Shown: one piece after another, positions 578 to 61,605 of the stretch
Layout: every line of letters starts with the position of its first letter
How positions within the stretch are numbered: position 1 is the first letter of the stretch
Assembly: GCA_965655095.1 (NCBI GenBank)
Contig: OZ296648.1
Span: 78,244,001 to 78,308,000 of the forward strand
DNA from: Haplodiscus bocki
Taxonomy: Eukaryota
DNA length: 64,000 bases
Reading direction: 5' to 3'
The notes under the pieces: model-generated
The model's database searches: none
What the model was told of the DNA's origin: nothing
What the model saw: the letters and a program-made list of their open reading frames with translations, nothing else
Position numbers and translations under genes: made by a program

Positions 578-1063
578 GTCCGCTATCAAGCACTTGTTTT
601 GGCAGCTAATGAAGTTGGGTTCTACGTCACTGCCGAAGTTATAAAGCCGCCGTTCAAATTGGCGTAGGATGGAGCGAAGCCAAAGGCACTAGCCCATATC
701 CAGAAACTTTTGTTGGGGTCAGCCCGACATCGAAACTCGGAGACAGTTTGCAAAACTGTCAAAATAAAGCACGCGAGTACAAATGTTAATCTGAATCCTG
801 CACCCACGGGATATGATGTACATGCCAACACCTTTGCCAGAAAAGTGCTCCTACTCACTGGTATCAAAGTCGTTGACATCAGAATATCTGGGAGAGAAGG
901 TGACCATATCAACATGGCCCATCCAAAAAAATAAAGCATTGCGTTAGCTCACACTCCAGGTAGAGCTCTTGATTTATTTTATTTGGATGTTTCGTTTTTG
1001 GAAGAACTGTACCGAACTTTTTTTTCTTTTGACGTTTTTCATCTTTCAAAACTCTTTAGATGA
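578..1063 (+). pseudogene. Divergent ribosomal protein uS5 (RPS2/S5-like) pseudogene, copy 1; representative of 37 copies
   Basis: The + frame reads VRYQALVLAANEVGFYVTAEVIKPPFKLA*DGAKPKALAHIQKLLLG...TVCKTVKIKHASTNVNLNPAPTGYDVHANTFARKVLLLTGIKVVDIRISGREGDHINMAHPKK*SIA. It is colinear with the uS5 N- and C-terminal domains by hand alignment. In-frame TAG at ~665 and TAA at ~932. Confidence 0.75.
622..939 (-). other. Recurrent 105-codon ATG-initiated antisense ORF overlapping the uS5-like frame (representative copy); probably a shadow ORF
   Basis: It is exactly 105 aa in 22 of 37 units in the ORF track. It is hydrophobic with no recognised homology, and shares third codon positions with the uS5-like frame. 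Confidence 0.25.
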
Positions 1064-1249
1064 GCACGAAAGTCATCCTCAAACTTGTATCCAGAACCGC
1101 AGACTCTCAGACTAGTTCATCCTACGGTCTCTTAAACCGGCTCTGAATAACTCAGTGATATGATTAACTGGAATGTTTTTAATTAGTTTGATACAACTTC
1201 CAAACCAAAAGACTTTTAGAAAAATTTTACACAGTTAATGTTGAGGAGC

Positions 1250-1735
1250 CTTTCGATACGGTCCTTTTCGATAGCGACTTTTTAACGGTGTTTCGGGCAG
1301 CACGTTTGTACGGTACTCTTTCGATGCAGAATTCGACACGGTGTTTTTTGGAAGCAATTTTTTAACGGTGTTTCGGGCAGCACGTTTGTACGGTACAATT
1401 TCGACGCAGAATTCGATACGGTGTTTTTTGTAAGCAATTTTTTAACAGTGTTTTGAGCAGCACTTTTGTACGACAACTTTTTGTCGAGCAACTCGATACG
1501 GTCTTTCTTCAGTGGCGATTTATTAACGGTGATACGGGCAGCACTTTTGTATGACACTTTTCTGACGACATTTTTGATACAGTTTGTTTTCGAAAATGGT
1601 TTTTTAACGGTGTCTAAGGAAGCACTTTCATGCTGTACCTCTTTGACAGGCATTTTGATACGGTCCTTTTTTGATAGCGATTTTCTGTGTGTGTTCCGGA
1701 CAGCTCTTTTGTACGGTACTTTTTCGACAAAATTT
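1250..1735. repeat. Internal minisatellite block of the unit (representative copy): about six degenerate 80/81-bp monomers plus a partial one
   Basis: tttaac(g/a)gtgttt..gcagcac.tttgtacg begins at 1281, 1361 and 1441 (exact 80-bp steps), with more diverged monomers at ~1522, ~1603 and ~1684. The block is present in every unit and produces the repeated KxxYKxAAxxTVxK peptides in the - strand ORFs. Confidence 0.93.
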
Positions 1736-4700
1736 TCCAGAGGCAAAGAACAATATACTAAAAAACTGACGGACAAAACAAGCAAGAGCCCAGAGAAAAA
1801 ACTATCACTGTCGCTAGATATTCGTACATTACCGCTGCGTTTGTTTAAAAACTCAAACAGAAAATGTGAGCAAGGGGATTCCTCCACTGAACCATAGTTT
1901 AAAGTACCAGTATCAGAATCAAAACTCTTTCTTGAACTTTCGACCTGCTCCTCTTTGGCATCAATCAAAATGTTCCGTGGCCTAAGTTGGAATCGTCAAT
2001 CGTATTTTTCTCAGTATCCGCTGAATCCTGCAACTCACTTTCTGATTAGATACATTGATTAAATCCAGAGTCTGGCGGTGAAGAACTTTCAACTGATTTT
2101 TAAGTCAAAGGGTTAAATTCATCAAATCCGATGAAATCTACCGCTACACAAAAATGCGTTAAAGAAGGCATTCTTGAGGGCGGTGAGACATTAAAGTATT
2201 CGATGGTTCTTGACCAACGCGCGGACAAAATGATGGAATTGTTCGTCAAAGCTTCAACTTCCAGTCCGCTATCAAGCACTTGTTTTGGCAGCTGATGAAG
2301 TTGGTTTCTGCGTCACTGCCGAAGTTATAAAGCCGCCGTTCAAATTGGCGTAGGATGCAGCGAAGTCAAAGCCACTAGCCCATATCCAGAAACTTTTGTT
2401 GGGGTCAGCCCTACATCGAAACTTGGAGACAGTTTGAAAAACTGTCAAAAAAAAGCACGCGAGTACAAATGTTAATCTGAATCCTGCACCCACGGGATAT
2501 GATGTACATGCCAACACCTTTGCCAGAAAAGTGCTCCTACTCACTGGTATCAAAGTCGTTGACATCAGAATATCTGGGAGAGAAGGTGACCATATCAACA
2601 TGGCCCATCCAAAAAAATAAAGCATTGCGTTAGCTCACACTCCAGGTAGAGCTCTTGATTTATTTTATTTGGATGTTTCGTTTTTGGAAGAACTGTACCG
2701 AACTTTTTTTTCTTTTGACGTTTTTCATCTTTCAAAACTCTTTAGATGAGCACGAAAGTCATCCTCAAACTTGTATCCAGAACCGCAGACTCTCAGACTA
2801 GTTCATCCTACGGTCTCTTAAACCGGCTCTGAATAACTCAGTGATATGATTAACTGGAATGTTTTTAATTAGTTTGATACAACTTCCAAACCAAAAGACT
2901 TTTAGAAAAATTTTACACAGTTAATGTTGAGGAGCCTTTCGATACTGTCCTTTTCGATAGCGACATTTTAACTTTGTTTCGGGCAGCACGTTTGTACGGT
3001 ACATTTTCGACGCAGAATTCGATACGGTGTTTTTTGTAAGCAATTTTTTTAAAGTGTTTTGAGCAGCACTTTTGTAAGAAAACTTTTTGTCGAGCAACTC
3101 GATACGGTCTTTCTTCAGTGGCGATTTATTAACGGTGATACGGGCAGCACTTTTGTATGACACTTTTCTGACGACATTTTTGATACAGTTTGTTTTCGAA
3201 AATGGTTTTTTAACGGTGTTTAAGGAAGCACTTTCATGCTGTACCTCTTTGACAGGCATTTTGATACGGTCCTTTTTTGATAGCGATTTTCTGTGTGTGT
3301 TCCGGACAGCTCTTTTGTACGGGACTTTTTCGACAAAGTTTTCTAGAGGCAAAGAACAATATACTAAAAAACTGACGGAGAAAACAAGCAAGAGCCCAGA
3401 AAAAAAATAATCACTGTCGCTAGATATTCGTACATTACCGCTGCGTTTGTTTAAAAACTCAAACAGAAAACGTGAGCAAGGGGATTCCTCCGCTGAACCA
3501 TAGTTTAAAGTACCAGTATCAGAATCAAAACTCTTTCCTGAACTTTCGACCTGCTCCTCTTTGGCATCAATCAAAATGTTCCGTGGCCTAAGTTGGAATC
3601 GTCAATCGTATTTTTCTCAATATCCGCTCAATCCTGCAACTCACTTTCTGATTAGATACATTGATTAAATCCAGAGTCTGGCGGTGAAGAACTTTCAACT
3701 GATTTTCAAGTCAAAGGGTTAAATTCATCAAATCCGATGAAATCTACCGCTACACAAAAATGCGTTAAAGAAGGCATTCTTGAGGGCGGTGAGACATTAA
3801 AGTATTCGATGGTTCTTGACCAACGCGCGGACAAAATGATGGAATTGTTCGTCAAAGCTTCAACTTCCATTCCGCTATCAAGCACTTGTTTTGGCAGCTG
3901 ATGAAGTTGGGTTCTACGTCACTGCCGAAGTTATAAAGCCGCCGTTCAAATTGGCGTAGGATGCAGCGAAGTCAAAGCCACTAGCCCATATCCAGAAACT
4001 TTTGTTGGGGTCAGCCCTACATCGAAACTTGGAGACAGTTTGCAAAACTGTCAAAAAAAAGCACGCGAGTACAAATGTTAATCTGAATCCTGCACCCACG
4101 GGATATGATGTACATGCCAACACCTTTGCCAGAAAAGTGCTCCTACTCACTGGTATCAAAGACTTTGACATCAAAATATCTGAGAGAGAAGGTGACCATA
4201 TCAACATGGCCCATCCAAAAAAAAACATTGCGTTAGCTCACACTCCAGGTAGAGCTCTTGATTTATTTTATTTGTATGTTTCGTTTTTGGAAGAACTGTA
4301 CCGAACTTTTTTTTCTTTTGACGTTTTTCATCTTTCAGAACTCTTTAGATGAGCACGAAAGTCATCCTCAAATTTGTATCCAGAACCGCAGACTCTCGGA
4401 CTAGTTCATCCTACGGTCTCTTAAACCGGCTCTGAATAACTCAGTGATATGATTAACTGGAATGTTTTTAATTAGTTTGATACAACTTCCAAACCTAAAG
4501 ACTTTTAGAAAAGTTTTACACAGTTAATGTTAAGGAGCCTTTCGATACGGTCCTTTTCGATAGCGACTTTTTAACGGTGTTTCGGGCAGCACGTTTGTAC
4601 GGTACTCTTTCGATGCAGAATTCGGCACGGTGTTTTTTGGAAGCAATTTTTTAACGGTGTTTCGGGCAGCACGTTTGTACGGTACATTTTCGACGCAGAA

Positions 4701-7700
4701 TTCGATACGGTGTTTTTTTTAAGCAATTTTTTAACAGTGTTTTGAGCAGCACTTTTGTACGACAACTTTTTGTCGAGCAACTCGATACGGTCTTTCTTCA
4801 GTGGCGATTTATTTACGGTGATACGGGCAGCACTTTTGTATGACACTTTTCTGACGACATTTTTGATACAGTTTGTTTTCGAAAATGGTTTTTTAACGGT
4901 GTTTAAGGAAGCACTTTCATGCTGTACCTCTTTGACAGGCATTTTGATACGGTCGTTTTTTGATAGCGATTTTCTGTGTGTGTTCCGGGCAGCTCTTTTG
5001 TACGGTACTTTTTCGACAAAATTTTCCAGACGCAAAGAACAATATACTAAAAAACTGGCGGAGAAAACAAGCAAGAGCCCAGAGAAAAAATAATCACTCT
5101 CGTCAGATATTCGTACATTACCGCTGCGTTTGTTTAAAAGCTGAAACAGAAAATGTGAGCAAAGGGATTCCTCCGCTGAACCATAGTTTAACGTACCAGT
5201 ATCAGAATCAAAACTCTTTCATGAACTTTCGACCTGCTCCTGTTCGGCATCAATCAAAATGTTCCGTGGCATAAATTGGAATCGTCAATCCTGTTTTCCT
5301 CAAAATCCTTTAAATTATCCAAATCACTTTCTGATTAAATACGTTGAAGAAATCCAGAGTCTGGCTGTGAACAATTTTCAACTGAATTCAGAGACAAGGG
5401 GTTATATTCATCAAATCCGATGAAATCTACCGCTACACAAAAATGCGTTAAAGAAGGCATTCTTGAGGGTGGTGAGACATTAAAGTATTCGATGGTTCTT
5501 GACCAACGCGCGGACAAAATGATGGAATTGTTCGTCAAAGCTTCAACTTCCAGTCCGCTATCAAGCACTTGTTTTGGCAGCTGATGAAGTTGGGTTCTAC
5601 GTCACTGCCGAAGTTATAAAGCCGCCGTTCAAATTGGCGTAGGATGCAGCGAAGTCAAAGGCACTAGCCCATATCCAGAAACTTTTGTTGGGGTCAGCCC
5701 TACATCGAAACTTGCAGACAGTTTGCAAAACTGTCAAAAAAAAGCACGCGAGTACAAATGTTAATCTGAATCCTGCACCCACGGGATATGATGTACATGC
5801 CAACACCTTTGCCAGAAAAGTGCTCCTACTCACTGGTATCAAAGACTTTGACATCAAAATATCTGAGAGAGAAGGTGACCATATCAACATGGCCCATCCA
5901 AAAAAATAAAGCATTGCGTTAGCTCACACTCCAGGTAGAGCTCTTGATATATTTTATTTGGATGTTTCGTTTTTGGAAGAACTGTACCGAACTTTTTTTT
6001 CTTTTGACGTTTTTCATCTTTCAGAACTCTTTAGATGAGCACAAAAGTCATCCTCAAACTTGTATCCAGAACCTCAGACTCTCAGACTAGTTCATCCTAC
6101 GGTCTCTTAAACCGGCTCTGAAAAACTCAGTGATATGATTAACTGGAATGTTTTTAATTAGTTTGATACAACTTCCAAACCAAAAGACTTTTAGAAAATT
6201 TTTACACAGTTAATGTTGAGGAGCCTTTCGATACGGTCCTTTTCGATGGCGACTTTTTAACGGTATTTCGGGCAGCACGTTTGTACGGTACATTTTCGAC
6301 GCAGAATTCGATACGGTGTTTTTTGTAAGCAATTTTTTTAAAGTGTTTTGAGCAGCACTTTTGTAAGAAAACTTTTTGTCGAGCAACTCGATACGGTCTT
6401 TCTTCAGTGGCGATTTATTAACGGTGATACGGGCAGCACTTTTGTATGACACTTTTCTGACGACATTTTTGATACAGTTTGTTTTCGAAAATGGTTTTTT
6501 AACGGTGTTTAAGGAAGCACTTTCATGCTGTACCTCTTTGACAGGCATTTTGATACGGTCCTTTTTTGATAGCGATTTTCTGTGTGTGTTCCGGACAGCT
6601 CTTTTGTACGGGACTTTTTCGACAAAGTTTTCTAGAGGCAAAGAACAATATACTAAAAAACTGACGGAGAAAACAAGCCAGAGCCCAGAGAAAAATTATT
6701 CACTGTCGCTAGATATTCGTACATTACCGCTGCGTTTGATTAAAAGCTCAAACAGAAAATGTGAGCAAGGGGATTCCTCCGCTGAACCATAGTTTAAAGT
6801 ACCAGTATCAGAATCAAAACTCTTTCTTGAACTTTCGACCTGCTCCTCTTTGGCATCAATCAAAATGTTCCGTGGCCTAAGTTGGAATCGTCAATCGTAT
6901 TTTTCTCAATATCCGCTGGATCCTGCAACTCACTTTCTGATTAGATACATTGATTAAATCCAGAGTCTGGCGGTGAAGAACTTTCAACTGATTTTTAAGT
7001 CAAAGCGTTAAATTCATCAAATCCGATGAAATCTACCGCTACACAAAAATGCGTTAAAGAAGGCATTCTTGAGGGTGTTGAGACATTAAAATATTCGATG
7101 GTTCTTGACCAACGCGCGGACAAAATGATGGAATTGTTCGTCAAAGCTTCAACTTCCAGTCCGCTATCAAGCACTTGTTTTGGCAGCTGATGAAGTTGGG
7201 TTCTACGTCACTGCCGAAGTTATAAAGCCGCCGTTCAAATTGGCGTAGGATGCAGCGAAGTCAAAGCCACTAGCCCATATCCAGAAACTTTTGTTGGGGT
7301 CAGCCCTACATCGAAACTTGGAGACAGTTTGCAAAACTGTCAAAAAAAAGCACGCGAGTACAAATGTTAATCTGAATCCTGCACCCACGGGATATGATGT
7401 ACATGCCAACACCTTTGCCAGAAAAGTGCTCCTACTCACTGGTATCAAAGAATTTGACATCAAAATATCTGAGAGAGAAGGTGACCATATCAACATGGCC
7501 CATCCAAAAAAATAAAGCATTGCGTTAGCTCACACTCCAGGTAGAGCTCTTGATTTATTTTATTTGGATGTTTCGTTTTTGGAAGAACTGTACCGAACTT
7601 TTTTTTCTTTTGACGTTTTTCATCTTTCAAAACTCTTTAGATGAGCACGAAAGTCATCCTCAAACTTGTATCCAGAACCGCAGACTCTCAGACTAGTTCA

Positions 7701-10700
7701 TCCTACGGTCTCTTAAACCGGCTCTGAATAACTCAGTGATATGATTAACTGGAATGTTCTTAATTAGTTTGATACAACTTCCAAACCAAAAGACTTTTAG
7801 AAAAATTTTACACAGTTAATGTTGAGGAGCCTTTCGATACGGTCCTTTTCGATAGCGACTTTTTAACGGTGTTTCGGGCAGCACGTTTGTACGGTACTCT
7901 TTCGATGCAGAATTCGACACGGTGTTTTTTGGAAGCAATTTTTTAACGGTGTTTCGGGCAGCACGTTTGTACTGTACATTTTCGACGCAGAATTCGATAC
8001 GGTGTTTTTTGTAAGCACTTTTTTAACAGTGTTTTGAGCAGCACTTTTGTACGACAACTTTTTGTCGAGCAACTCGATACGGTCTTTCTTCAGTGGCGAT
8101 TTATTAACGGTGATACGGGCAGCACTTTTGTATGACACTTTTCTGACGACATTTTTGATACAGTTTGTTTTCGAAAATGGTTTTTTAACGGTGTTTAAGG
8201 AAGCACTTTCATGCTGTACGTCTTTGACAGGCATTTTGATACGGTCCTTTTTTGATAGCGATTTTCTGTGTGTGTTCCGGACAGCTCTTTTGTACGGTAC
8301 TTTTTCGACAAAATTTTCCAGAGGCAAAGAACAATATACTAAAAAACTGACGGAGAAAACAAGCAAGAGCCCAGAGAAAAAATAATCACTGTCGCTAGAT
8401 ATTCGTACATTACCGCTGCGTTTGTTTAAAAACTCAAACAGAAAATGTGAGCAAGGGGATTCCTCCACTGAACCATAGTTTAAATACCAGTATCAGAATC
8501 AAAACTCTTTCTTGAACTTTCGACCTGCTCCTCTTTGGCATCAATCAAAATGTTCCGTGGCCTAAGTTGGAATCGTCAATCGTATTTTTCTCAATATCCG
8601 CTGAATCCTGCAACTCACTTTCTGATTAGATACATTGATTAAATCCAGAGTCTGGCGGTGAAGAACTTTCAACTGATTTTTAAGTCAAAGGGTTAAATTC
8701 ATCAAATCCGATGAAATCTACCGCTACACAAAAATGCGTTAAAGAAGGCATTCTTGAGGGTGGTGAGACATTAAAGTATTTGATGGTTCTTGACCAACGC
8801 GCGGACAAAATGATGGAATTGTTCGTCAAAGCTTCAACTTCCAGTCCGCTATCAAGCACTTGTTTTGGCAGCTGATGAAGTTGGGTTCTACGTCACTGCC
8901 GAAGTTATAAAGCCGCCGTTCAAATTGGCGTAGGATGCAGCGAAGTCAAAGGCACTAGCCCATATCCAGAAACTTTTGTTGGGGTCAGCCCTACATCGAA
9001 ACTTGCAGACAGTTTGCAAAACTGTCAAAAAAAAGCACGCGAGTACAAATGTTAATCTGAATCCTGCACCCACGGGATATGATGTACATGCCAACACCTT
9101 TGCCAGAAAAGTGCTCCTACTCACTGGTATCAAAGACTTTGACATCAAAATATCTGAGAGAGAAGGTGACCATATCAACATGGCCCATCCAAAAAAATAA
9201 AGCATTGCGTTAGCTCACACTCCAGGTAGAGCTCTTGATTTATTTTATTTGGATGTTTCGTTTTTGGAAGAACTGTACCGAACTTTTTTTTCTTTTGACG
9301 TCTTTCATCTTTCAGAACTCTTTAGATGAGCACAAAAGTCATCCTCAAACTTGTATCCAGAACCTCAGACTCTCAGACTAGTTCATCCTACGGTCTCTTA
9401 AACCGGCTCTGAATAACTCAGTGATATGATTAACTGGAATGTTTTTAATTAGTTTGATACAACTTCCAAACCAAAAGACTTTTCGAAAAATTTTACACAG
9501 TTTATGTTGAGGAGCCTTTCGATACGGTCCTTTTCGATAGCGACATTTTAACGGTGTTTCGGGCAGCACGTTTGTACGGTACATTTTCGACGCAGAATTC
9601 GATACGGTGTTTTTTGTAAGCAATTTTTTAACAGTGTTTTGAGCAGCACTTTTGTACGAAAACTTTTGTCGAGCAACTCGATACGGTCTTTCCTCAGTGG
9701 CGATTTATTAACGGTGATACGGGCAGCACTTTTGTATGACACTTTTCTGACGACATTTTTGATACAGTTTGTTTTCGAAAATGGTTTTTTAACGGTGTTT
9801 AAGGAAGCACTTTCATGCTGTACCTCTTTGACAGGCATTTTGATACGGTCCTTTTTTGATAGCGATTTTCTGTGTGTGTTCCGGACAGCTCTTTTGTACG
9901 GTACTTTTTCGACAAAGTTTTCTAGAGGCAAAGAACAATATACTAAAAAACTGACGGAGAAAACAAGCAAGAGCCCAAAGAAAAAATAATCACTGTCGCT
10001 AGATATTCGTACATTACCGCTGCGTTTGTTTAAAAACTCAAACAGAAAATGTGAGCAAGGGGATTCCTCCGCTGAACCATAGTTTAAAGTATCAGTAGCA
10101 GAATCAAAACTCTTTCCTGAACTTTCGACCTGCTCCTCTTAGGCATCAATCAAAATGTTCCGTGGCCTAAGTTGGAATCGTCAATCGTATTTTTCTCAAT
10201 ATACGCTGAATCGTGCAACTCACTTTCTGATTAGTTACATTGACTAAATCCAGAGTCTGTCGGTGAAGAACTTTCAACTGATTTTTAAGTCAAAGGGTTA
10301 AATTCATCAAACACGATGAAATCTACCGCTACACAAAAATGCGTTAAAGAAGGCATTCTTGAGGGTGGTGAGACATTAAAGTATTCGATGGTTCTTGACC
10401 AACGCGCGGACAAAATGATGGAATTGTTCGTCAAAGCTTCAACTTCCAGTCCGCTATCAAGCACTTGTTTTGGCAGCTGATGAAGTTGGGTTCTACGTCA
10501 CTGCCGAAGTTATAAAGCCGCCGTTCAAATTGGCGTAGGATGCAGCGAAGTCAAAGGCACTAGCCCATATCCAGAAACTTTTGTTGGGGTCAGCCCTACA
10601 TCGAAACTTGCAGACAGTTTGCAAAACTGTCAAAAAAAAGCACGCGAGTACAAATGTTAATCTGAATCCTGCACCCACGGGATATGATGTACATGCCAAC

Positions 10701-28700: not shown

Positions 28701-30269
28701 CTGCTGAAGTTATAAAGCCGCCGCTCAAATTGGAGTAGTAGGCAGCGAGGTTAAAGACAATAGCCCGTATCCAAAAACTTTTGTTGGGGTCAGCCTTATG
28801 TCGAAACTTGGAGACAGTTTGCAAAACTGTCAAAAGAAACCACGCGAGTACAAATGTGAATCTGAATCCTGCACCCACGGGACTTGATGTACATGCCCAC
28901 ACATTTGCCAGAAAAGTGCTCCTACTCACTGGTGTCACAGACTGTGACATCAGAATATCTGGGAGAGAAGGTGACTATATCAAAATGGCCCATCCAAAAG
29001 AACAAAACATTGCGTTAGCTCACATTCCAAGGAAAGCTATTGATATTTTTTATTTGGATGTTTCGTTTATGGAGGAAATGTACCGAATTTTTTTTTTTTG
29101 ATGTTTCTCATCTTTCAAAACTCTTTAGATGATCACAAAAGTCATCCTCAAACGTGTATCCAGATCCACAGACTCTCAGACTAGTTTATCCTACGGTCTC
29201 CTAAACCGGCTCTGAATATCTAACTGATATAATTGACTGGAATGTTTTTAATTAGTTTGATACAACTTCTAAATCGAAAGTCTTTTGGAAAAATTTCCGC
29301 AGTTATTGTTGAGGAGCCTTTCCATATGGTCCTTTTTGATAGCAACTTTCTAACGGTGTTTTGGGCAGCACGTTTGTACGGTACTCTTTAGACGCAGAAT
29401 TCGATACTGTGTTTTTGGAAGCAATTTTCCAACGGTGTTTCGGGCAGCACGTTTGTACGGTACTTTTTCGACGCAGAATTCGATACGGTGTTTTTTGTAG
29501 GCAATTTTTTAACAGTGTTTTGAGCAGCACTTTTAAACGACAAGTTTTCGTTGACCAATTCGATACGGTCTTTCTTCCCTGGCGATTTTTTAACGGTGAC
29601 ATGGGCAGCACTTTTGTATGAAACTTTTTTGACGACAATTTTGATACGGTTTATTTTTGAAAATGGTTTTCTAACGGTGTCTAAGGAAGCACTTTCATGC
29701 TGTACCTCTTTAACAGGCATTTTGATACGGTCCTTTTTTGGTAGCGGTTTTCTACGTGTGTTCGGGGCAGCTTTTTGTACGGTACTTTTTCCTCAAACTT
29801 TTCCAGAGACAAAGAAAAATACACTGCAAAACTGACGGAGAAAACAAGCAATAGCCCAGAGAAAAAATAATCACTGTCGCTAGATACTCGTACATTACCG
29901 CTGCGTTTGCTTAAAAGCTCAAACAGAGAAGGCCAGCAAGGAGTTTCCTCCCCTGAACCATAGTTTAAGGTACCAGTATCAGAATCAAAACTCTTTCATG
30001 AACTTTCGACCTGCTCCTGTTCGGCATCAATCAACATGTTCCGTGGCTTAAGTTGGAATCGTCAATCCTGATTTCCTCAAAATCCGCTAAAACCTCCAAA
30101 TCACTTTCTGATTAAATACGTTGATTAAATCCGGAGTCTGGCGGTGAAGAAATTTCAACTGAATGTAGAGACAAAGGGTTGAATTCATCAAATCCGATGA
30201 AATCTTCCGCTACATAAAAATGCGTTAAAGAAGGCATTCTGGAGGGTGGTTAGACATTAAATTATTTGA

Positions 30270-30818
30270 CTCTTCTGGACCAACGCGCGGCGGACAAAAA
30301 GATGGATTTGTTCGTCAAAGTTTCCACTTCTAGTCCGCTATCAAGCAATTGTTTTGGCAGCTGATGACGTTGGGTTCTACGACACTGCTGAAGTTATAGA
30401 GCCGCCGCTCAAGCTGGCGTTGGAGGCAGCGATGTCAGAGCCACTAGCCCATATCCAAAAACTTTTGTTGGGGTCAGCCTTATGTCGAAACTTGGAGACA
30501 GTTTGCAAAACTGTCCAAAGAAAACGCGCGAGTACAAATGTGAATCTGAAACCTGCACCCACGGGACATGATGTACATGTCCACACATTTGCCAGAAAAG
30601 TGCTCCTACTCACTGGTATCAAAGACTGTGACATCAGAATATCTGGGAGAGAAGGTGACTATATCAAAAGGGCCCATCCAAAAGAACAAAACATTGCGTT
30701 AGCTCACATTCCAAGAAAAGCTATTGATATTTTTTATTTGGATGTTTCGTTTATGGAGGAAATGTACCGAATTTTTTTTTCTTTTGATGTTTTTCATCTT
30801 TCAAAACTCTTTAGATGA
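30270..30818 (+). CDS. uS5-like open reading frame, copy 19; stop-free over the whole core and C-terminal tail, no clear start codon
   Basis: Track ORF 30354-30818 (154 aa). By hand the frame stays open upstream to a TGA at 30267-30269. The three stops common in other copies read AGA (30300), TTG (~30420) and CAA (~30687) here. The first ATG lies inside the domain (~30432), so expression is unproven. Confidence 0.4.
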   Translation, partial: LFWTNARRTKRWICSSKFPLLVRYQAIVLAADDVGFYDTAEVIEPPLKLALEAAMSEPLAHIQKLLLGSALCRNLETVCKTVQRKRASTNVNLKPAPTGHDVHVHTFARKVLLLTGIKDCDIRISGREGDYIKRAHPKEQNIALAHIPRKAIDIFYLDVSFMEEMYRIFFSFDVFHLSKLFR

Positions 30819-48800: not shown

Positions 48801-51800
48801 AACAATTCGGGGACAAAAAGATGGAATTGTTCGTCAAAGTTTCCACATCCAGTCCGCTATCAAGCAATTGCTTTGGCAACTGATGAAGATGGGTTCTACG
48901 GCACTGCTGAAGTTATAAAGCCGCCGCTCAAATTGGAGTAGTAGGCAGCGAAGTCAAAGACAATAGCCCGTATCCAAGCACTTTTGTTGGGGTCAGCCTT
49001 ATATCGAAACTTGGAGACAGTTTTTAAAACTGTCAAAAGAAAGCACGCGAATACAAATGTGGTTCTGAATCCTGCACCCACGGGATATGATGTAAATGCC
49101 CACACTTTTGCCAGAAAAGTGCTCCTACTCACTGGTAGCAAAGACTGTGAAAACAGAATATCTGGGAGAGAAGGTGACCATATCAAAATGGCCCATCCAA
49201 AAGAAGAAAGCATTGCGTTAGCTCACATTCCAAGAAAAGCTCTTGATATTTTTTATTTGGATGTTTCGTTTATGGAGGAAATGTACCGAATTTTTCTTTC
49301 TTTTGATGTTTTTCATCTCTCAAAACTCTTTAGATGATCACAAAAGTCATCCTCAAACGTGTATCCAGAACCACAGACTCTCAAACTAGTTCACCCTACG
49401 GTCTGTTAAACCGGCTCTGAATAACTAAGTGATATGATTAACTGGAATGTTTTTAATTAGTTTGATACAACTTCTAAATCGAAAGTCTTTTAGAAAAATT
49501 TCCACAGATATTGTTGAAGAGCCTTTCCATATGGTCTTTTTGATAGCAACTTTTTAACGGTGTTTCGGGCAGCACGTTTGTACGGTACTCTTTCGACGCA
49601 GAATTCGATACGGTGTTTTTGGAAGCAATTTTCTAACGGTGTTTCCGGTAGCACGTTTGTACGGTACTCTTTCGACGCAGAATTCGATACGGTGTTTTTT
49701 GTAAGCAATTTTTTACCAGTGTTTTGAGCAGCACTTTTGTACGACAAGTTTTCGTCGAGCAATTCGATACGGTCTTTCTCCCATGGCAATTTATTAACGG
49801 TGATATGGGCAGCACTTTTGTATGACACTTTTTTGACGACAATTTTGATACTGTTTATTTTTGAAAATGGTCTTTTAACGGTGTTTAAGGAAACACTTTC
49901 GTGCTGTACCTCATTGACAGGCATTTTGATACGGTCCTTTTTTGATAGCGGTTTTCTTTGTTTGTTTCGGGCAGCACTTTTGTACGGTACTTTTTCGACA
50001 AACTTTGTCCGAGACGAAGAACAGAACACTGCAAAACTGACGGAGAAAACAAGCAAGAGCCCAGAAAAAAAAACAATCACAGTCGCTAGATGTTCGTACA
50101 TTACCGCTGCGTTTGTTTAAAAACTCAAACAGAGAAGTCCAGAAAGGAGCTTCCTCACCTGAACCATAGTTTAAAGTACCAGTATCAGAATCAAACTTCT
50201 TTCTTGAACTTTCGACCTGCTCCTCTTTGGCATTAATCAAAATGTTCCGTGGCCTAAGTTGGAATCGTCAATCGTATTTTTCTCAAAATCCGCTGAATCC
50301 TGCAACTCACTTTCTGATTAGATACGTTGGTTAAATCCAGAGTCTGGCGGTGAAGAACTTTCAACTGAATATGAAGTCAAAGGGTTAAATTCATCCAATC
50401 CGATGAAATCTACCGCTACATAAATTTCGTTAAAGAAGGCATTCTTGCGGGTGGTGAGACATTAATTTCTTTGATGATTCTTGAACAATTCGGGGACAAA
50501 AAGATGGAATTGTTCGTCAAAGTTTCAACATCCAGTCCGCTATCAAGCAATTGCTTTGGCAACTGATGAAGATGGGTTCTACGGCACTGCTGAAGTTATA
50601 AAGCCGCCGCTCAAATTGGAGTATTAGGCAGCGAAGTCAAAGACAATAGCCCGTATCCAAGCACTTTTGTTGGGGTCAGCCTTATATCGAAACTTGGAGA
50701 CAGTTTTTAAAACTGTCAAAAGAAAGCACGCGAATACAAATGTGGTTCTGAATCCTGCACCCACGGGATATGATGTAAATGCCCACACTTTTGCCAGAAA
50801 AGTGCTCCTACTCACTCGTAGCAAAGACTGTGAAAACAGAATATCTGGGAGAGAAGGTGACCATATCAAAATGGCCCATCCAAAAGAAGAAAGCATTGCG
50901 TTAGCTCACATTCCAAGAAAAGCTCTTGATAGTTTTTATTTGGATGTGTCGTTTATGGAGGAAATGTACCGAATTTTTCTTTCTTTTGATGTTTTTCATC
51001 TTTCAAAACTCTTTAGATGATCGCAAAAGTCATCCTCAAACGTGTATCCAGAACCACAGACTCTCAGACTAATTCATCCTACGGTCTCCTAAACCGGCTC
51101 TGAAAAACTAACTGATATGATTGACTGGAATGTTTTTAATTAGTTTGATACAATTTCTAAATCGAAAGTCTTTTAGAAAATATTCCACAGTTAATGTTGA
51201 GGAGCCTTTCCATACGCTCCTTTTCGATAGCAACTTTTTAACGGTGTTCCGGGCAGCACGTTTGTACGGTACTCCTTCGACGCAGAAATCGATACTGTGT
51301 TTTGGGAAGCAATTTTCTAACGGTGTTTCGGGCAGCACGTTTGTGCGGTACTTTTTCGACGCAGAATTCGATACGGTGTTTTTTGTAAGCAATTTTTTAA
51401 CAGTGTTTTGAGCAGCACTTTTGTACGACAACTTTTTGTCGAGCAATTCGGTACGGTCTTTCTTCCATGGCGATTTATTAACGTTGATATGGGCAGCACT
51501 TTTGTATGAAACTTTTTTGACGACCATTTTGATTTGGTTTTTTTTTGAAAATGGTTTTTAACGGTGTCTACGGAAGCACTTTCATGCTGTACCTCTTTGA
51601 CAGGCATTTTGATACGGTCCTTTTTTGATAGCGATTTTCTGTGTGTGTTCCGGACAGCTCTTTTGTACGGTACTTTTTCGACAAAATTTTCCAGAGGCAA
51701 AGAACAATATACTAAAAAACTGACGGAGAAAACAAGCAAGAGCCCAGAGAAAAAATAATCACTCTCGTCAGATATTCGTACATTACCGCTGCGTTTGTTT

Positions 51801-52217
51801 AAAAGCTGAAACAGAAAATGTGAGCAAGGGGATTCCTCCGCTGAACCATAGTTTAAAGTACCAGTATCAGAATCAAAACTCTTTCATGAACTTTCGACCT
51901 GCTCCTGTTCGGCATCAATCAAAATGTTCCGTGGCATAAGTTGGAATCGTCAATCCTGTTTTCCTCAAAATCCTTTAAATTATCCAAATCACTCTCTGAT
52001 TAAATACGTTGATTAAATCCGGAGTCTGGCGGTGAAGAAATTTCAACTGAATATAGAGACAAAGGGTTGAATTCATCAAATCCGATGAAACCTTCCGCTA
52101 CATAAAAATGCGTTGAAGAAGGCATTCTGGAGGGTGGTTAGACATTAAATTATTTGACTCTTCTGGACCAACGCGCGGACAAAATGATGTATTTGTTCGT
52201 CAAAGTTTCCACTTCCA

Positions 52218-52574
52218 GTCCACTATCAAGCAATTGCTTTGGTAGCTGATGAAGATGGGTTCTACGACACTGCCAAAGGTAAAAATCCGCCGTTCAAATT
52301 GGCATACGAGGCAGCAAAATCAAAAGCACTAGCCCATAACCAAAAACTTTTGTTGGGGTCAGCCTTATGTCGAAACTTGGAGACAGTTTGCAAAACTGTC
52401 AAAAGAAACCACGCGAGTACAAATGTGAATCTGAATCCTGCACCCACGGGACTTGATGTACATGCCCACACATTTGCCAGAAAAGTGCTCCTACTCACTG
52501 GTGTCACAGACTGTGACATCAGAATATCTGGGAGAGAAGGTGACCATATCAAAATGGCCCATCCAAAAGAATAA
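52218..52574 (+). pseudogene. uS5-like copy 32, open through both domains, truncated by TAA after HPKE
   Basis: Reads YQAIALVADEDGFYDTAKGKNPPFKLAYEAAKSKALAHNQKLLLG...PAPTG...GVTDC...HPKE*. It has TAC where most copies have TAG. Confidence 0.7.
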
Positions 52575-53900
52575 AGCATTGCGTTAGCTCACATTCCAAG
52601 AAAAGCTCTTGATATTTTTTATTTGGATGTTTCGTTTATGGAGGAAATGTACCGAATTTTTCTTTCTTTTGATGTTTTTCATCTCTCAAAACTCTTTAGA
52701 TGATCACAAAAGTCATCCTCAAACGTGTTTCCAGAACCACAGACTCTCAGACTAGTTCATCCTACGGTCTCTTAAACCGGCTCTGAATAACTCAGTGATA
52801 TGATTAACTGGAATACTTTTAATTAGTTTGGTACAACTTCTAAATCGAAAGTCTTCTAGAAAAAATTCCACAGTTAATGTTGAGGAGCCTTTCCATACGG
52901 TCCTTTTCGATAGCAACTTTTTAACGGTGTTTCGGGCAGCACGTTTGTACGGTACTCGTTCGACGCAGAATTCGATACTGTGTTTTTGGAAGCAATTTTC
53001 TAACGGTGTTTCGGGCAGCACGTTTGTACGGTACTATTTCGACGCAGAATTCGATACGGTGTTTTTTGTAAGCAGTTTTTTAACAGTGTTTTGAGCAGAA
53101 CTTTTGTACGACAAGTTTTCGTCGAGCAATTTGATACGGTCTTTCTTTCATGGCAATTTATTAACGGTGATATGGGCAGCACTTTTGTATGACACTTTTT
53201 TGACGACAATTTTGATACGGTTTTTCTTGAAAATGGTTTTTTAACGGTGTTTAAGGAAACACTTTCATGCTGTACCTATTTAACAGGCGTTTTGATACGG
53301 TCCTTTTTTGATAGCGATTTTCTGTGTGTGTTCCGGACAGCTCTTTTGTACGGTACTTTTTCGACAAAATTTTCCAGAGGCAAAGAACAATATACTAAAA
53401 AACTGACGGAGAAAACAAGCAAGAGCCCAGAGAAAAAATAATCACTCTCGTCAGATATTCGTACATTACCGCTGCGTTTGTTTAAAAGCTGAAACAGAAA
53501 ATGTGAGCAAGCGGATTCCTCCCCTGAACCATAGTTTAAAGTACCGGTATCAGAATCAAAACTCTTTCATGAACTTTCGACCTGCTCCTCTTCGGCATCA
53601 GTCAAAATGTTCCGTGGCTTAAGTTGGAATCGTCAATCCTGTTTTCCTCAAAATCCGCTAAAACCTCCAAATCACTTTCTGATTAAATACGTTGATTATA
53701 TCCGGAGTCTGGTGGTGAAGAAATTTCAACTGAATATAGAGACAAAGGGTTGAATTCATCAAATCCGATGAAATCTTCCGCTACATAAAAATGCGTTGAA
53801 GAAGGCATTCTTGAGTGTGGTTAGACATTAAAGTATTTCACTCTTCTTAACCAACGCGCGGACAAAATGATGTATTTGTTCGTCAAAGTTTCCACTTCCA

Positions 53901-54257
53901 GTCCACTATCAAGCAATTGCTTTGGTAGCTGATGAAGATGGGTTCTACGACACTGCCAAAGGTAAAAATCCGCCGTTCAAATTGGCATACGAGGCAGCAA
54001 AATCAAAAGCACTAGCCCATAACCAAAAACTTTTGTTGGGGTCAGCCTTATGTCGAAACTTGGAGACAGTTTGCAAAACTGTCAAAAGAAACCACGCGAG
54101 TACAAATGTGAATCTGAATCCTGCACCCACGGGACTTGATGTACATGCCCACACATTTGCCAGAAAAGTGCTCCTACTCACTGGTGTCACAGACTGTGAC
54201 ATCAGAATATCTGGGAGAGAAGGTGACCATATCAAAATGGCCCATCCAAAAGAATAA
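53901..54257 (+). pseudogene. uS5-like copy 33, translation identical to copy 32
   Basis: Track ORF 53922-54257 has the same translation as 52239-52574, 1683 bp away. Confidence 0.7.
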
Positions 54258-57200
54258 AGCATTGCGTTAGCTCACATTCCAAGAAAAGCTCTTGATATTT
54301 TTTATTTGGATGTTTCGTTTATGGAGGAAATGTACCGAATTTTTCTTTCTTTTGATGTTTTTCATCTCTCAAAACTCTTTAGATGATCACAAAAGTCATC
54401 CTCAAACGTGTTTCCAGAACCACAGACTCTCAGACTAGTTCATCCTACGGTCTCTTAAACCGGCTCTGAATAACTCAGTGATATGATTAACTGGAAAACT
54501 TTTAATTAGTTTGGTACAACTTCTAAATCGAAAGTCTTCTAGAAAAAATTCCACAGTTAATGTTGAGGAGCCTTTCCATACGGTCCTTTTCGATAGCAAC
54601 TTTTTAACGGTGTTTCGGGCAGCACGTTTGTACGGTACTCGTTCGACGCAGAATTCGATACTGTGTTTTTGGAAGCAATTTTCTAACGGTGTTTCGGGCA
54701 GCACGTTTGTACGGTACTATTTCGACGCAGAATTCGATACGGTGTTTTTTGTAAGCAGTTTTTTAACAGTGTTTTGAGCAGAACTTTTGTACGACAAGTT
54801 TTCGTCGAGCAATTTGATACGGTCTTTCTTTCATGGCAATTTATTAACGGTGATATGGGCAGCACTTTTGTATGACACTTTTTTGACGACAATTTTGATA
54901 CGGTTTTTCTTGAAAATGGTTTTTTAACGGTGTTTAAGGAAACACTTTCATGCTGTACCTCTTTAACAGGCGTTTTGATACGGTCCTTTTTTGATAGCGA
55001 TTTTCTGTGTGTGTTCCGGACAGCTCTTTTGTACGGTACTTTTTCGACAAAATTTTCCAGAGGCAAAGAACAATATACTAAAAAACTGACGGAGAAAACA
55101 AGCAAGAGCCCAGAGAAAAAATAATCACTCTCGTCAGATATTCGTACATTACCGCTGCGTTTGTTTAAAAGCTGAAACAGAAAATGTGAGCCAGCGGATT
55201 CCTCCCCTGAACCATAGTTTAAAGTACCGGTATCAGAATCAAAACTCTTTCATGAACTTTCGACCTGCTCCTCTTCGGCATCAATCAAAATGTTCCGTGG
55301 CGTAAGTTGGAATCGTCAATCCTGTTTTCCTCAAAATCCGCTAAAACCTCCAAATCACTTTCTGATTAAATACGTTGATTATATCCGGAGTCTGGTGGTG
55401 AAGAAATTTCAACTGAATATAGAGACAAAGGGTTGAATTCATCAAATCCGATGAAATCTTCCGCTACATAAAAATGCGTTGAAGAAGGCATTCTTGAGTG
55501 TGGTTAGACATTAAAGTATTTCACTCTTCTTGACCAACGCGCAGACAAAATGATGTATTTGTTCGTCAAAGTTTCCACTTCCAGTCCACTATCAAGCAAT
55601 TGCTTTGGTAGCTGATGAAGATGGGTTCTACGACACTGCCAAAGTTAAAAAGCAGCCGTTCAAATTGGCATACGAGGCAGCAAAATCAAAAGCACTAGCC
55701 CATAACCAAAAACTTTTGTTGGGGTCAGCCTTATGTCGAAACTTGGAGACAGTTTGCAAAACTGTCAAAAGAAAGCACGCGAGTACAAATGCGAATCTTA
55801 ACCTGCACCCACGGGACATGATGTACATGCCCACACATTTGCCAGAAAAGTGCTCCTACTCACTGGTGTCAAAAACTGTGACATCAGAATATCTGGGATA
55901 GAAGGTGACCATATCAAAATGGCCCATCCAAAAGAATAAAGCATTGCGTTAGCTCACATTCCAAGAAAAGCTTTTGATATTTTTTATTTGGATGTTTCGC
56001 TTATGGAGGAAATGTACCGAATTTTTCTTTCTTTTTATGTTTTTCATCTTTCAAAACTCTTTAGATGATCACAAAGGTCATCCTCAAACGTGCATCCAGA
56101 ACCACAGACTCCCAGACAATTCATCCTACGGTCTCTTAAACCGGCTCTGAATAACTAAGTGATATGATTAACTGGAATGTTTTTAATTAGTTCGATACAA
56201 CTTCTAAATCGAAAGTCTTTTAGAAAAAGTTCCAAAGTTAATGTTGAGGAGCCTTTACATACGGTCCGTTTTGATAGCAACTTTTTAACGGAGTTTCGGG
56301 CAGCACGTTTGTACGGTACTCTTTCGACGCAGAATTCGATACTGTGTTTTTGGAAGCAATTCTCTAACGGTGTTTCGGGCAGCACGTTTGTACAGTACTC
56401 TTTCGACGCAGAATTCGACACCGTGTTTTTTGTAAGCAATTTTTAACAGTGTTTTGAGCAGCACTTTTGTATGACAAGTTTTCGTCGAGCATTTCGATAC
56501 GGTCTTTCTTCCATGGCGATTTATTAACGGTGATATGGGCAGAACTTTTGTATGACACTTTTTTGACGACATTTTTGATACGGTTTTCTTTTGAAAATGG
56601 TTTTTTTAACGGTGCTTAAGGAAACACTTTCGTGCTGTACCTATTTGACAGGCATTTTGATACGGTCCTTTTTTGATAGCGGTTTTCTTTGTGTGTTTCG
56701 GGCAGCACTTTTGTACGGTACTTTTTCGACAAACTTTGTCAGAGACAAAGAACAGAATACTGCAAAACTGAAGGAGAAAACAAGCAAGAGCCCAGAAAAA
56801 AAACAATCACAGAAACTAGATGTTCGTACATTACCGCTGAGTTTAATTAAAAGCTCAAACAGAGAAGGCAAGCAAGGAGCTTCCTCACTTGAACCATAGT
56901 TTAAAGTACCAGTATCAGAATCAAATTTCTTTCTTGAACCTTCGACCTGCTCCTCTTTGGCATCAACCAAAATGTTCCGTGGCCTAAGTTGGAATCGTCA
57001 ATCGTATTTTTCTCAAAATCCGCTGAATCCTGCAACTCACTTTCTGATTAGATACGTTGATTAAATCCAGAGTCTGGCGGTGAAGAACTTTCAACTGAAT
57101 ATAAAGTCAAAGGGTTAAATTCATCCAATCCGATAAAATCTAACGCTACATAAAAATGCGTTAAAGAAGGCATTCTTGCGGGTGGTGAGACATTAATTTC

Positions 57201-60200
57201 TTTGATGATTCTTGACCAATGCGGTGACAAATTGATGGAATTGTTCGCCAAAGTTTCCACTTCCATTCCACTATCAAGCAATTGCTTTGGCAGCTGATAA
57301 AGATGGGTTCTACGACATGGCAAAGGTAAAAAGCCGCCGTTCAAATTGGCATACGAGGCAGCGAAATCAAAAGCACTAGCCCATAACCAAAAACTTTTGT
57401 TGGGGTCAGCCTTTTATCGAAACTTGGAGACAGTTTTCAAAACAGTCAAAGGAAAGCACGCGAATACAATTGTGGTTCTGAACCCTGACCCACGGGATAG
57501 GATGTAAGTGCCCACACTTTTGCCAGAAAAGTGCTCCTACTTACTGGTATCAAAGTTGGTGACATCAAATTATCTGAGAGAGAAGGTGAACATATCAACA
57601 CGGCCGATCCAAAAGAATAAAGAATAAAGCATTGCGTTAGCTCACATTCCAAGAAGAGCTCTTGATTTTTTTTATTTGGATAGTTCGTTTATGGAGGAAC
57701 TGTATCTAATTTTTTTTCTATCGATGTTTTTCATTTTTCAAAACTCTCTAGATGAGCACAAAAATGATCCTCAAACGTGTAACCAGAATCCCAGACTCTC
57801 AGACTAGTTCATCCTACGCTCTCTTAAACCGGCTCTGAATAACTCAGTGATATGTTTAACTGGAATGTTTTTAATAAGTTTGATACAACTTCCAAATCAA
57901 AGGCTTTTAGAAAATTTCCACAGGTAATGTTAAGGTGCCTTTCGAAACGGTCCTTTTTCGATAGCGATTTTTTAACGGTGTTTCGGGCAGCACATTTGTA
58001 CGGTACTTTTTCGACGCGAAATTCGATACGATGTTTTTTGGAAAGCAATTTTTTAACAGTGTTTTGGACAGCACTTTTAAACGGTACATTTTTGATAGAA
58101 TTTTTTAACAGTCTTTCGAGCAGCACTTTTGTACGACAACTTTTCGTCGAGCAATTCGATACGGCCTTTTTCCATGGCGTTTATTGACGGTGATAAGGGC
58201 AGCACTTTTGTTTGACACTTTTTGACGACAATTTTGATACGGTTTATTTTCGAAAATGGTCTTTTAACGGTGTTTAAGGAAACACTTTTATGCTGTAGCT
58301 CTTTGACAGGCATTTCGATACGGTCCTTTTTTGATAGCGGCTTTCTATGTGTGTTTCGGGCAGCACTTCTGTACGGTACTTTTTCGACAAACTTTGTCAG
58401 AGACAAAGAACAAAATACTGCAAAGCTGACGGAGAAAACAAGCAAGAGCCCAGAAAAAAAACAATCACAGTCGCTAGATGTTCGTACATTACCGCTGCGT
58501 TTGTTTAAAAGCTCAAACAGAGAAGGCCAGCAAGGAGCTTCCTCACCTGAACCATAGTTTAAAGTACCAGTATCAGAATCAGAATTCTTTCTTGAACTTT
58601 CGACCTGCTCCTCTTTGGCATCAATCAAAATGTTCCGTGGCCTAAGTTGGAATCGTCAATCGTATTTTTCTCAAAATCCGCTGAATCCTGCAACTCACTT
58701 TCTGATTAGATACGTTGATTAAACCCAGAGTCTGGCGGTGAAAAATTTTCAACTGAATATGAAGACAAAGGCTTAAATTCATCAATTCCGATGAAATCTA
58801 CCGTTACAAAAAATGCGTTAAAGGAGGCATTCTTGCTGGTGGTGGGACATTAAAGCCTTTGATGATTCTTGAACAATTCGGGGACAAAAAGATGGAATTG
58901 TCCGTCAAAGTTTCCACTTCCAGTCCGCTATCAAGCAATTGCTTTGGCAACTGATGAAGATGGGCTCTACGACACTGCTGAAGTTATAAAACCGCCGCTC
59001 AATTAGGCATACGAGGCAGCGAAATCAAAAGCACTAGCCCATAACCAAAAACTTTTGTTGGGGTCAGCCTTTTATCGAAACTTGGAGACAGTTTTCAAAA
59101 CAGTCAAAGGAAAGCACGCGAATACAATTGTGGTTATGAACCCTGCACCCACGGGATAGGATGTAAGTGCCCACACTTTTGCCAGAAAAGTGCTCCTACT
59201 TACTGGTATCAAAGTTGGTGACATCAAATTATCTGAGAGAGAAGGTGAACATATCAACACGGCCGATCCAAAAGAATAAAGAATAAAGCATTGCGTTAGC
59301 TCACATTCCAAGAAGAGCTCTTGATTTTTTTTATTTGGATAGTTCGTTTATGGAGGAACTGTATCTAATTTTTTTTCTATCGATGTTTTTCATTTTTCAA
59401 AACTCTCTAGATGAGCACAAAAATGATCCTCAAACGTGTAACCAGAATCGCAGACTCTCAGACTAGTTCATCCTACGCTCTCTTAAACCGGCTCTGAATA
59501 ACTCAGTGATATGTTTAACTGGAATGTTTTTAATAAGTTTGATACAACTTCCAAATCAAAGGCTTTTAGAAAAATTCCACAGGTAATGTTAAGGTGCCTT
59601 TCGAAACGGTCCTTTTTCGATAGCGATTTTTTAACGGTGTTTCGGGCAGCACATTTGTACGGTACTTTTTCGACGCGAAATTCGATACGATGTTTTTTGG
59701 AAAGCAATTTTTTAACAGTGTTTTGGACAGCACTTTTGAACGGTACATTTTTGATAGAAATTTTTAACAGTCTTTCGACCAGCACTTTTGTACGACAACT
59801 TTTCGTCGAGCAATTCGATACGGCCTTTTTCCATGGCGTTTATTGACGGTGATATGGGCAGCACTTTTGTATGACACTTTTTGACGACAATTTTGATACG
59901 GTTTTTTTTCGAAAATGGTCTTTTAAAGGTGTTTAAGGAAACACATTCATGCTGTACCTCTTTGACAGGCATTTCGATACGGTCCTTTTTTGATAGCGGC
60001 TTTCTATGTGTGTTTCGGGCAGCACTTCTGTACGGTACTTTTTCGACAAACTTTGTCAGAGACAAAGAACAAAATACTGCAAAACTGACGGATAAAACAA
60101 GCAAGAGCCCAGAAAAAAAAACAATCACAGTCGCTAGATGTTCGTACATTACCGCTGCGTTTGTTTAAAAGCTCAAACAGAGAAGGCAAGCAAGGAGCTT

Positions 60201-61605
60201 CCTCACTTGAACCATAGTTTAAAGTACCAGTATCAGAATCAAATTTCTTTCTTGAACCTTCGACCTGCTCCTCTTTGGCATCAACCAAAATGTTCCGTGG
60301 CCTAAGTTGGAATCGTCAATCGTATTTTTCTCAAAATCCGCTGAATCCTGCAACTCACTTTCTGATTAGATACGTTGATTAAACCCAGAGTCTGGCGGTG
60401 AAAAACTTTCAACTGAATTTGAAGACAAAGGCTTAAATTCATCAATTCCGATGAAATCTACCGTTACAAAAATTGCGTTAAAGGAGGCATTCTTGCTGGT
60501 GGTGGGACATTAAAGCCTTTGATGATTCTTGAACAATTCGGGGACAAAAAGATGGAATTGTCCGTCAAAGTTTCCACTTCCAGTCCAATATCAAGCAATT
60601 GCTTTGGCAACTGATGAAGATGGGTTCTACGACACTGCTGAAGTTATAAAACCGCCGCTCAATTAGGCGTAGGAGGCAGCGAAGTCACAGGCACTAGCCC
60701 ATGTCATAGGATTTTTGTTGGGGTCAGCCTTATGTCGCAACTTGGAGACCGCTTGCAAAATTGTAAAAGGAAAGCACGCGAGTACAAATGTGGTTCTGAA
60801 TCCTGCACCCACGGGATATGATGTACATGCCCACACCTTTGCCAGAAAAGTGCTCCTACTCACTGGTATCAAAGACTGTGACATGGAAATATCTGGGAGA
60901 GAAGACGACCATATCAATACGGTCGATCCAAAAGAATAAAGCATTGCGTTAGCTCACATTCCAAGAAAAGCTCTTGATATTTTTTATTTGGATGTTTCGT
61001 TTATGGAGGAAATATACCGAATTTTTTTTCTTTTGATGTTTTTCATCTTTCAAAACTCTTTAAATGATCGCAAAAGTCATCCTCAAACGTGCATCCAGAA
61101 CCACAGACTCTCACACTAGTTCATCTTACGGTCTCTTAAACCGGCTCTGAATAACTAAGTGATATGATTAACGGGAATGTTTTTAATTAGTTTGATACAA
61201 CTTCTAAATCGAAAGTCTTTCAGAAAAATTTCCACAGTTAATGTTGAGGAGCCTTTACATACGGTCCGTTTTGATAGCAACTTTTAACGGTGTTTCGGGC
61301 AGCACGTTTGTACGGTTCTCTTTCGACGCAGAATTCAATACGGTCATTTTCCAAGGCGATTTATTAACGGTGGTTTGGGCAGCACTTTTGTACGAAGGTT
61401 TTTAACGAGCATTTTGATACGGTTTATTTTCGAAACTCGTTTTTTAACTGTGCTTAAGGAAGCACTTTCGTGCGATACATCATTGACAGGCATATCGATA
61501 CTGTTTTTTCGATAGCGATATTTTAACAGTGTTCTGGGCAGCGCTATTGTACGGCACTTTTTCGACAAACTTTTCCAGAGGCAAAGAACAATAAACTGCA
61601 AAAAT

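Follow-up and report, generated by a model that had tools for sequence, protein, structure and literature searches.

A macrosatellite of Haplodiscus bocki probably derived from a Polinton/Maverick provirus with a compact uS5 homologue

How a gene for a core ribosomal protein came to be repeated dozens of times in tandem, and whether its copies are still genes, is the question raised by a locus in the genome of Haplodiscus bocki. The stretch analysed here, hereafter the window, comprises 64,000 nucleotides of the forward strand (NCBI GenBank assembly GCA_965655095.1, contig OZ296648.1, positions 78,244,001 to 78,308,000). The original prediction for this stretch, made from the letters alone, described a macrosatellite whose unit carries a highly diverged gene of the small-subunit protein uS5 (RPS2 in eukaryotes). 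Our analysis suggests, with a probability of roughly 0.88, that the array is satellite DNA derived from an integrated Polinton/Maverick provirus that carried a compact uS5 homologue.

The tandem array and its uS5-like frame

An anchor placed inside the S5 frame occurs 37 times in the window at spacings of 1603-1691 bp, and k-mer spacing counts gave a main peak at 1683-1686 bp and a second one at 1604-1606 bp. BLAST comparison of a single unit (unit 19, 30250-31925) with the window returned full-length plus-strand copies all the way from position 3 to about 61603, with identities of 84-95%; the final 2.4 kb are non-repeated, and the G+C content stays at about 40% all along the window. With many head-to-tail copies in one orientation and a unit longer than 1 kb, the locus is a macrosatellite, and the 37 units counted agree with the predicted amplification of at least 37 times. 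From its record position 18761 on, the ENA contig ctg88523 (466,687 bp, sample ERZ26859043) matches the window letter by letter, and the preceding 12.85 kb of this contig are also array, which brings it to 74 kb or more and to at least 45 units; these sizes are lower bounds, as the left boundary was not reached. Identity between units averages 90% over all pairs and reaches 99.6% between neighbours. The length classes of 1605 and 1684 bp can be attributed to the gain or loss of one repeat of an 80-bp minisatellite inside the unit. In units 1-7 (window 495-12051), lengths of 1686 and 1606 bp alternate, and identity at distance two often exceeds that at distance one, which points to a higher-order repeat of two units. 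The close identity of neighbours, the alternation at the left and the occurrence of blocks of similar units fit unequal exchange with local homogenisation.

The plus-strand frame that had been read as uS5 is present in every unit where it was predicted, although the peptide given for it turned out to be a mosaic of several units, matching no single one. The Pfam comparison proposed at the time was carried out: unit 19 scored 27.6 bits with Ribosomal_S5_C (cut-off 21.5, E 2e-6) and the copy at 52218-52571 scored 26.5 bits against the same cut-off, and the window copies gave no match to the N-terminal S5 domain (PF00333). A phmmer search with unit 19 against all PDB sequences yielded 73 matches, all of them uS5 and weak (E 0.02-1), several of the alignments spanning both S5 domains at E 0.02-0.3. 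AlphaFold, run on the single sequence of unit 19, gave no usable model, the predicted local distance difference test score (pLDDT) being 50. The glycines of the GLG and TGIV motifs are indeed lost in the window copies, as had been remarked, whereas intact relatives (see below) retain G-x-G and G-V-G. Taken together, these comparisons indicate that the uS5 similarity of the window copies exceeds chance, badly worn as the copies are.

Single-copy relatives and the Polinton/Maverick context

Related loci (L numbers) and the relatives of the uS5-like protein (P numbers) place the unit in a larger context. The unit together with the right flank of the array is collinear with two single-copy loci, L003 (74-78% DNA identity) and L007 (70-72%), one unit being equivalent to L003 9973-11971. 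Within each unit lie the uS5-like gene, present from approximately codon 13 onwards, and its 3' region, the 80-bp minisatellite and the antisense end of a gene for a 336-residue protein (p336), of which a minus-strand fragment was found in all units tested. At the unit junction the tail of this fragment abuts the P-x-V-R-Y-Q codons with at most 2-3 shared base pairs, a possible microhomology, and owing to the position of this junction the array units lack the first ~13 codons and the EE-x-L-K-V-x-P strand that is conserved in intact relatives. Past the right end of the array the sequence picks up at the equivalent of L003 12476, and about 1 kb that is present in L003 and L007, comprising most of the 336-residue gene, is missing there. 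The intact p336 gene (L002 8592-9599, minus strand) encodes an acidic C-terminal part that includes a conserved FDSDTGTLNY motif, and its product belongs to no Pfam family.

Beyond the array, the right flank holds the broken remains of a protein-primed family B polymerase (pPolB), where its DNA identity to L003 is 78%. Pfam found nothing in the open reading frames (ORFs) of this flank, and the polymerase was recognised solely by tblastn with an intact relative, the 1108-residue neighbour of P0011 in L002, which is itself a pPolB (PF03175, 46.3 bits). The tblastn search with pPolB also matched the same relative position in L001, L003 and L007. The resulting gene order is the uS5-like gene (+), the 336-residue gene (-), the polymerase (-) and a gene for a 205-residue protein (-).

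Contig walking (L001+L008 and L002+L011) recovered two copies of one 19.7-kb element with a mutual identity of 92-95%. The element is bounded by terminal inverted repeats of 72-78 bp, exactly where the homology between both loci ends; it starts with AGTAGTATAGGG and ends with ...CT, and is therefore of the AG...CT type. Each insertion is flanked by one pair of 6-bp target duplications (CCCCTA/CCCCTA and GATACC/GATATC), and an rve integrase was matched in L011 (33.0 bits, cut-off 32.6). Terminal repeats, AG...CT ends, 6-bp duplications, pPolB and rve are shared with the Polintons/Mavericks (polintoviruses, adintovirus-like proviruses), and by these defining features the 19.7-kb element is a Polinton/Maverick. 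The window holds no visible rve integrase; its own element runs off the right end. The relatives differ from other Polintons in that the first gene inward from one terminus encodes a uS5 homologue, with a tandem-repeat region after it.

In the 19.7-kb element the uS5-like gene begins 0.8 kb inside the left terminus, and in the diverged loci L003, L004 and L007 the motif of this terminus recurs, with 3-5 mismatches, at 0.6-1.1 kb upstream of the gene. Given this fixed position, and with identities of only 44-47% between the polymerases of L003 and L007 and that of L002, the gene is an old, position-conserved component of this Polinton group. Its place in the window and in four other loci, beside pPolB and inside the terminal repeat, indicates that the uS5-like family is virus-borne; of the two origins that the original prediction had allowed, host or virus, the termini and the polymerase context favour the latter.

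Directly downstream of the uS5-like gene, L002 (6269-8465) and L001 (11076-11406) contain repeats of ~27 bp, a period taken from BLAST match offsets, over ~2.2 kb and 0.3 kb, respectively; this region is open in several frames and was annotated as a 658-residue 'protein'. At the corresponding place the window lineage has its 80-bp minisatellite, which also lies 3' of the uS5-like gene in L003 (ten copies) and, by DNA similarity, in L004. What seems to be conserved at this place is the presence of tandem repeats, the repeat unit itself being subject to change.

Several observations weigh against tracing the array to a Polinton with a uS5-like gene of its own. All loci with genomic context come from one genome, and the two relatives from other samples lie on contigs shorter than 1 kb, in which no Polinton linkage is readable. 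Scans of IMG/VR with the family alignment and with two single members returned no family member, and a scan of JGI metagenomes returned no family member either, only canonical archaeal S5 within a ribosomal-protein operon. The further likenesses of the relatives to Polintons are weak: the matches to a Pox_A32-type ATPase (22.0 and 18.6 bits, cut-off 22.8) and to an adenain-type protease (Peptidase_C5, 18.2 bits, cut-off 21.3) fall below threshold, and the double-jelly-roll capsid is suggested by a protein of 400-439 residues through a language-model feature similarity of 0.98 to eukaryotic DJR-like_dom clusters and Preplasmiviricota capsids, which is weak evidence. In addition, the sequence covered does not extend to the left boundary of the array, so that the rest of the parent element there is out of view.

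Formation and decay of the array

The collinearity with single-copy loci suggests a route by which the satellite may have arisen. An old, already decaying Polinton copy in the host genome would have been the starting point. An illegitimate join, with no more than the 2-3 bp of microhomology seen at the junction, may have connected the uS5-like gene, near its codon 13, with a point in the 336-residue gene and so duplicated a 1.7-kb segment in which the 3' parts of the two genes converge on the intervening minisatellite. This segment would subsequently have grown to at least 45 units by unequal exchange and become partly homogenised in the process. As in other satellite DNA derived from transposable elements (TEs), an internal piece of a mobile element has been amplified head to tail and homogenised among neighbours; differences are the large 1.7-kb unit, which nests an older 80-bp minisatellite, and the Polinton source, the unit covering the convergent 3' ends of two genes. 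The array illustrates how a provirus fragment may turn into tens of kilobases of tandem DNA.

A block of this kind could also act as a source of small RNAs directed against the Polinton, a trap resembling a cluster of PIWI-interacting RNAs. The array does contain fragments of two Polinton genes in sense as well as antisense orientation, and a large one-directional block of provirus fragments lies beside a dead provirus, which is circumstantial evidence. TE-derived satellites, however, commonly arise without any such role, and we consider this explanation unlikely.

The state of the copies bears on another alternative, in which the array would be a functional tandem gene family, similar to histone genes or ribosomal DNA, mass-producing a uS5-like protein or RNA. 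While the high copy number, the rarity of indels in the S5 segment and the fully open unit 19 would fit such a family, the start and the first ~13 codons are removed by the unit junction, and in 36 of the 37 units the 120 S5-derived codons are interrupted by a frameshift or by one to five in-frame stops, unit 19 being the only open one. Variable sites number 49/58/49 at codon positions 1/2/3, as equal as in non-coding control stretches, and sequence variation is uniform along the unit, with the S5 part no more conserved than the remainder. The ratio of nonsynonymous to synonymous substitution rates (dN/dS) is 0.86-1.3 among unit 19, L003 and L007, which marks the window's own lineage as decaying, and rare indels equally suit a young, homogenised satellite. 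A functional gene family is thus very unlikely, and the array is, by all these measures of sequence change, dead DNA whose copies drift neutrally. Since both gene fragments lack their 5' end and drift in this way, the array is expected to make no uS5-like protein. The earlier idea of a paralogue later amplified as a satellite holds, with the refinement that the copies, 5'-truncated and neutral, do not constitute a set of genes. Annotators should be aware that the numerous 'uS5-like' ORFs in the array are no genes.

A compact uS5 family and its possible role

A word-indexed protein search with unit 19 returned only the window's own ORF. An exhaustive phmmer search with the same unit over 1.84 billion representative proteins retrieved ten proteins, eight of which are short relatives or fragments, and no canonical RPS2 at E <= 0.001; the matches to P0006 and P0010, repeat proteins of 1732-1985 residues, were dismissed as low-complexity. 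Further family members were brought in by a profile search. P0011, P0012, P0013, P0015 and P0017 stem from the ENA sample of the window's contig, P0008 from a Tara Oceans metagenome scaffold and P0009 from another metagenome. The intact-looking members have 141-153 residues and are 24-43% identical to P0011, to which they align end to end with few gaps. P0011 itself passes both Pfam thresholds, with 33.8 bits for the N-terminal domain (cut-off 27.1) and 44.1 bits for the C-terminal domain (cut-off 21.5). The family profile matched eukaryotic cytosolic RPS2 best (E 2e-26, profile positions 1-137 to fly RPS2 56-193), with archaeal S5 slightly below and bacterial and mitochondrial S5 absent from the top 60. 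P0008 alone gave mammalian RPS2 as the top match at 72.8 bits, versus 66-67 bits for archaea. In a word-indexed search for eukaryotic RPS2, all matches were S5 proteins of DPANN archaea.

An AlphaFold model of P0011, based on an alignment of the family with archaeal S5, reached a pLDDT of 90 and a predicted template modelling score of 0.81. Its superposition on the uS5 of rabbit, C. elegans and human gave a template modelling score of 0.87, a root-mean-square deviation of 1.6-1.8 Å and 42% identity, the identity to archaeal, fungal and plant uS5 being 33-39%. The top 50 Foldseek matches of the model are ribosome structures throughout, the profile matches naming the chain as uS5, and the BFVD library of viral protein models held nothing that matches it. 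As judged from this model, the relative P0011 has the uS5 fold.

The family shares with eukaryotic cytosolic RPS2 both S5 domains (PF00333 and PF03719 in intact relatives), the PAP-x-G, GI-x-DC and N-x-A-K-A motifs and a basic character (isoelectric point 9.3-11, net charge +7 to +12). Unlike RPS2, which has ~250-293 residues, its members have ~145-153, corresponding to approximately residues 103-247 only of the 293-residue mammalian chains in the PDB. They have neither the N-terminal extension (~100 residues in the human protein) nor the C-terminal tail, their gene travels on a mobile element, and none is a canonical RPS2 of full length and high identity. The Arg of the PAPRG motif is substituted in every aligned member, and the net charge reaches about half the value of the archaeal S5 cores used for comparison, which, with one exception, carry +14 to +24.

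These properties bear on the possibility that the unit is an ordinary decayed pseudogene or retrocopy of host RPS2, amplified by chance. Eukaryotic cytosolic RPS2 proteins are indeed the family's best matches, and the array copies are clearly dead. Against this, unit 19 retrieved compact relatives and not a single canonical RPS2 from the 1.84 billion representatives, as expected from the earlier claim that it is no fresh RPS2 retrocopy. Moreover, the relatives form a separate compact family with conserved ends, and at five loci the gene occupies a fixed place inside Polinton termini, even though the polymerases are only 44-47% identical. Deep lineages of the family show saturated synonymous sites (dS) with dN of 0.5-0.9, and the gene was therefore maintained as coding over a long time. 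A host-derived pseudogene is accordingly highly improbable, whereas the long-lived specialised paralogue first proposed is supported by divergent members that keep the uS5 fold under saturated dS. That the repeat is an assembly artefact is hardly credible, for although long arrays are error-prone and the identical ENA contig may represent the same assembly, the units differ by 1-25% in a graded, neighbour-correlated manner with length variants, and Logan short-read contigs of two samples run across the right junction between array and flank without differences and cover unit variants.

The parent of the array copies is a real, long-conserved Polinton gene, which, as rankings by PDB score and identity suggest, was most likely captured from an animal host RPS2. 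We infer, as the likeliest single option but one less probable than not, that the parent protein acts on the host small ribosomal subunit or on the partners of uS5 during replication of the element. The basic charge, the intact fold and the long conservation would fit incorporation into the 40S subunit in place of host uS5, or binding of uS5's partners or RNA. More specifically, and only tentatively, the trimmed uS5 made during element activity might enter the host 40S subunit at the mRNA entry channel or titrate the partners of uS5. The 145-residue protein with its confident model would offer a handle on whether Polintons alter host ribosomes.

Viral ribosomal-protein genes are known mainly from phages. 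A full-text search of open-access papers and bioRxiv found no paper on a ribosomal-protein gene in Polintons, Mavericks or adintoviruses, and as far as we could find, a compact uS5 gene has not been reported earlier in Polintons. A survey of viral ribosomal proteins (PMC6375957) does not mention uS5, nor does a 2024 paper (PMC11499249) that presents eL40 in giant viruses as the first protein of this kind from any virus of eukaryotes. The present case resembles those described there (bS21, bL12 and others in phages; eL40 in giant viruses) in that a virus-like element encodes a protein homologous to a core ribosomal protein (PMC6375957, PMC11499249); the difference is that the carrier here is a small, 20-kb integrating animal element and the protein a trimmed core. 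Should the tentatively proposed action on the 40S subunit or on the partners of uS5 be real, the trimmed uS5 would be the first ribosomal-protein homologue known in Polintons and a route by which a small integrating virus could tune host translation. A uS5 core at a fixed position in diverged animal Polintons would extend the ribosomal proteins of eukaryotic viruses to small integrating DNA viruses.

Table 1. Coordinates of the array, of unit 19 and of the right flank in the window
Feature	Position	Strand	Remarks
Macrosatellite array	1..61603	+	37 units and, in addition, a partial one at either end; ~1684 bp, variants of 1605, 1660 and 1691 bp
Unit 19, junction to junction	30328..32004	+	sole unit with an open S5 frame
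Unit junction	30320..30332		antisense p336-like 3' fragment fused to ~codon 13 of the uS5-like gene
uS5-derived coding remnant, unit 19	30333..30692	+	120 codons from VRYQ; C-terminal helix degenerate
Stop-free ORF of unit 19	30354-30818	+	only unit free of stops
Minisatellite inside unit 19	31006..31483	+	79-81-bp repeat, 4-6 copies per unit
p336-like gene, C-terminal fragment	31558..32015	-	~150 codons; stops; cut by unit junction
Array right end	61603..61608		final unit breaks off within the minisatellite
pPolB, broken into several frames	61808..64000	-	tblastn with L002 pPolB, 47% identity, E 3e-161; runs past window end

Some minor features were observed in the related loci. In L004, a decayed uS5-like copy, with the Polinton terminal motif at L004 8873, lies ~5 kb from a host gene encoding a WD40 beta-propeller (3818-5043, minus strand). 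The polymerase of L002 (9654-12977, minus strand) shows a weak Endonuclease_7 or RING-variant zinc-finger-like match at residues 497-533 (19.6 bits, below cut-off), just ahead of the polymerase domain, its first ~500 residues having no Pfam match. Just within the right terminus of the L001 element, L008 contains five tandem repeats of 469 bp (1400-3644), which are 99% identical and each carry an ORF of 122 residues; the sister copy, L011, has one such repeat. A 197-bp palindrome overlaps the inner right terminal inverted repeat in both copies of the element (L002+L011 23922-24118; L001+L008 28782-28978).

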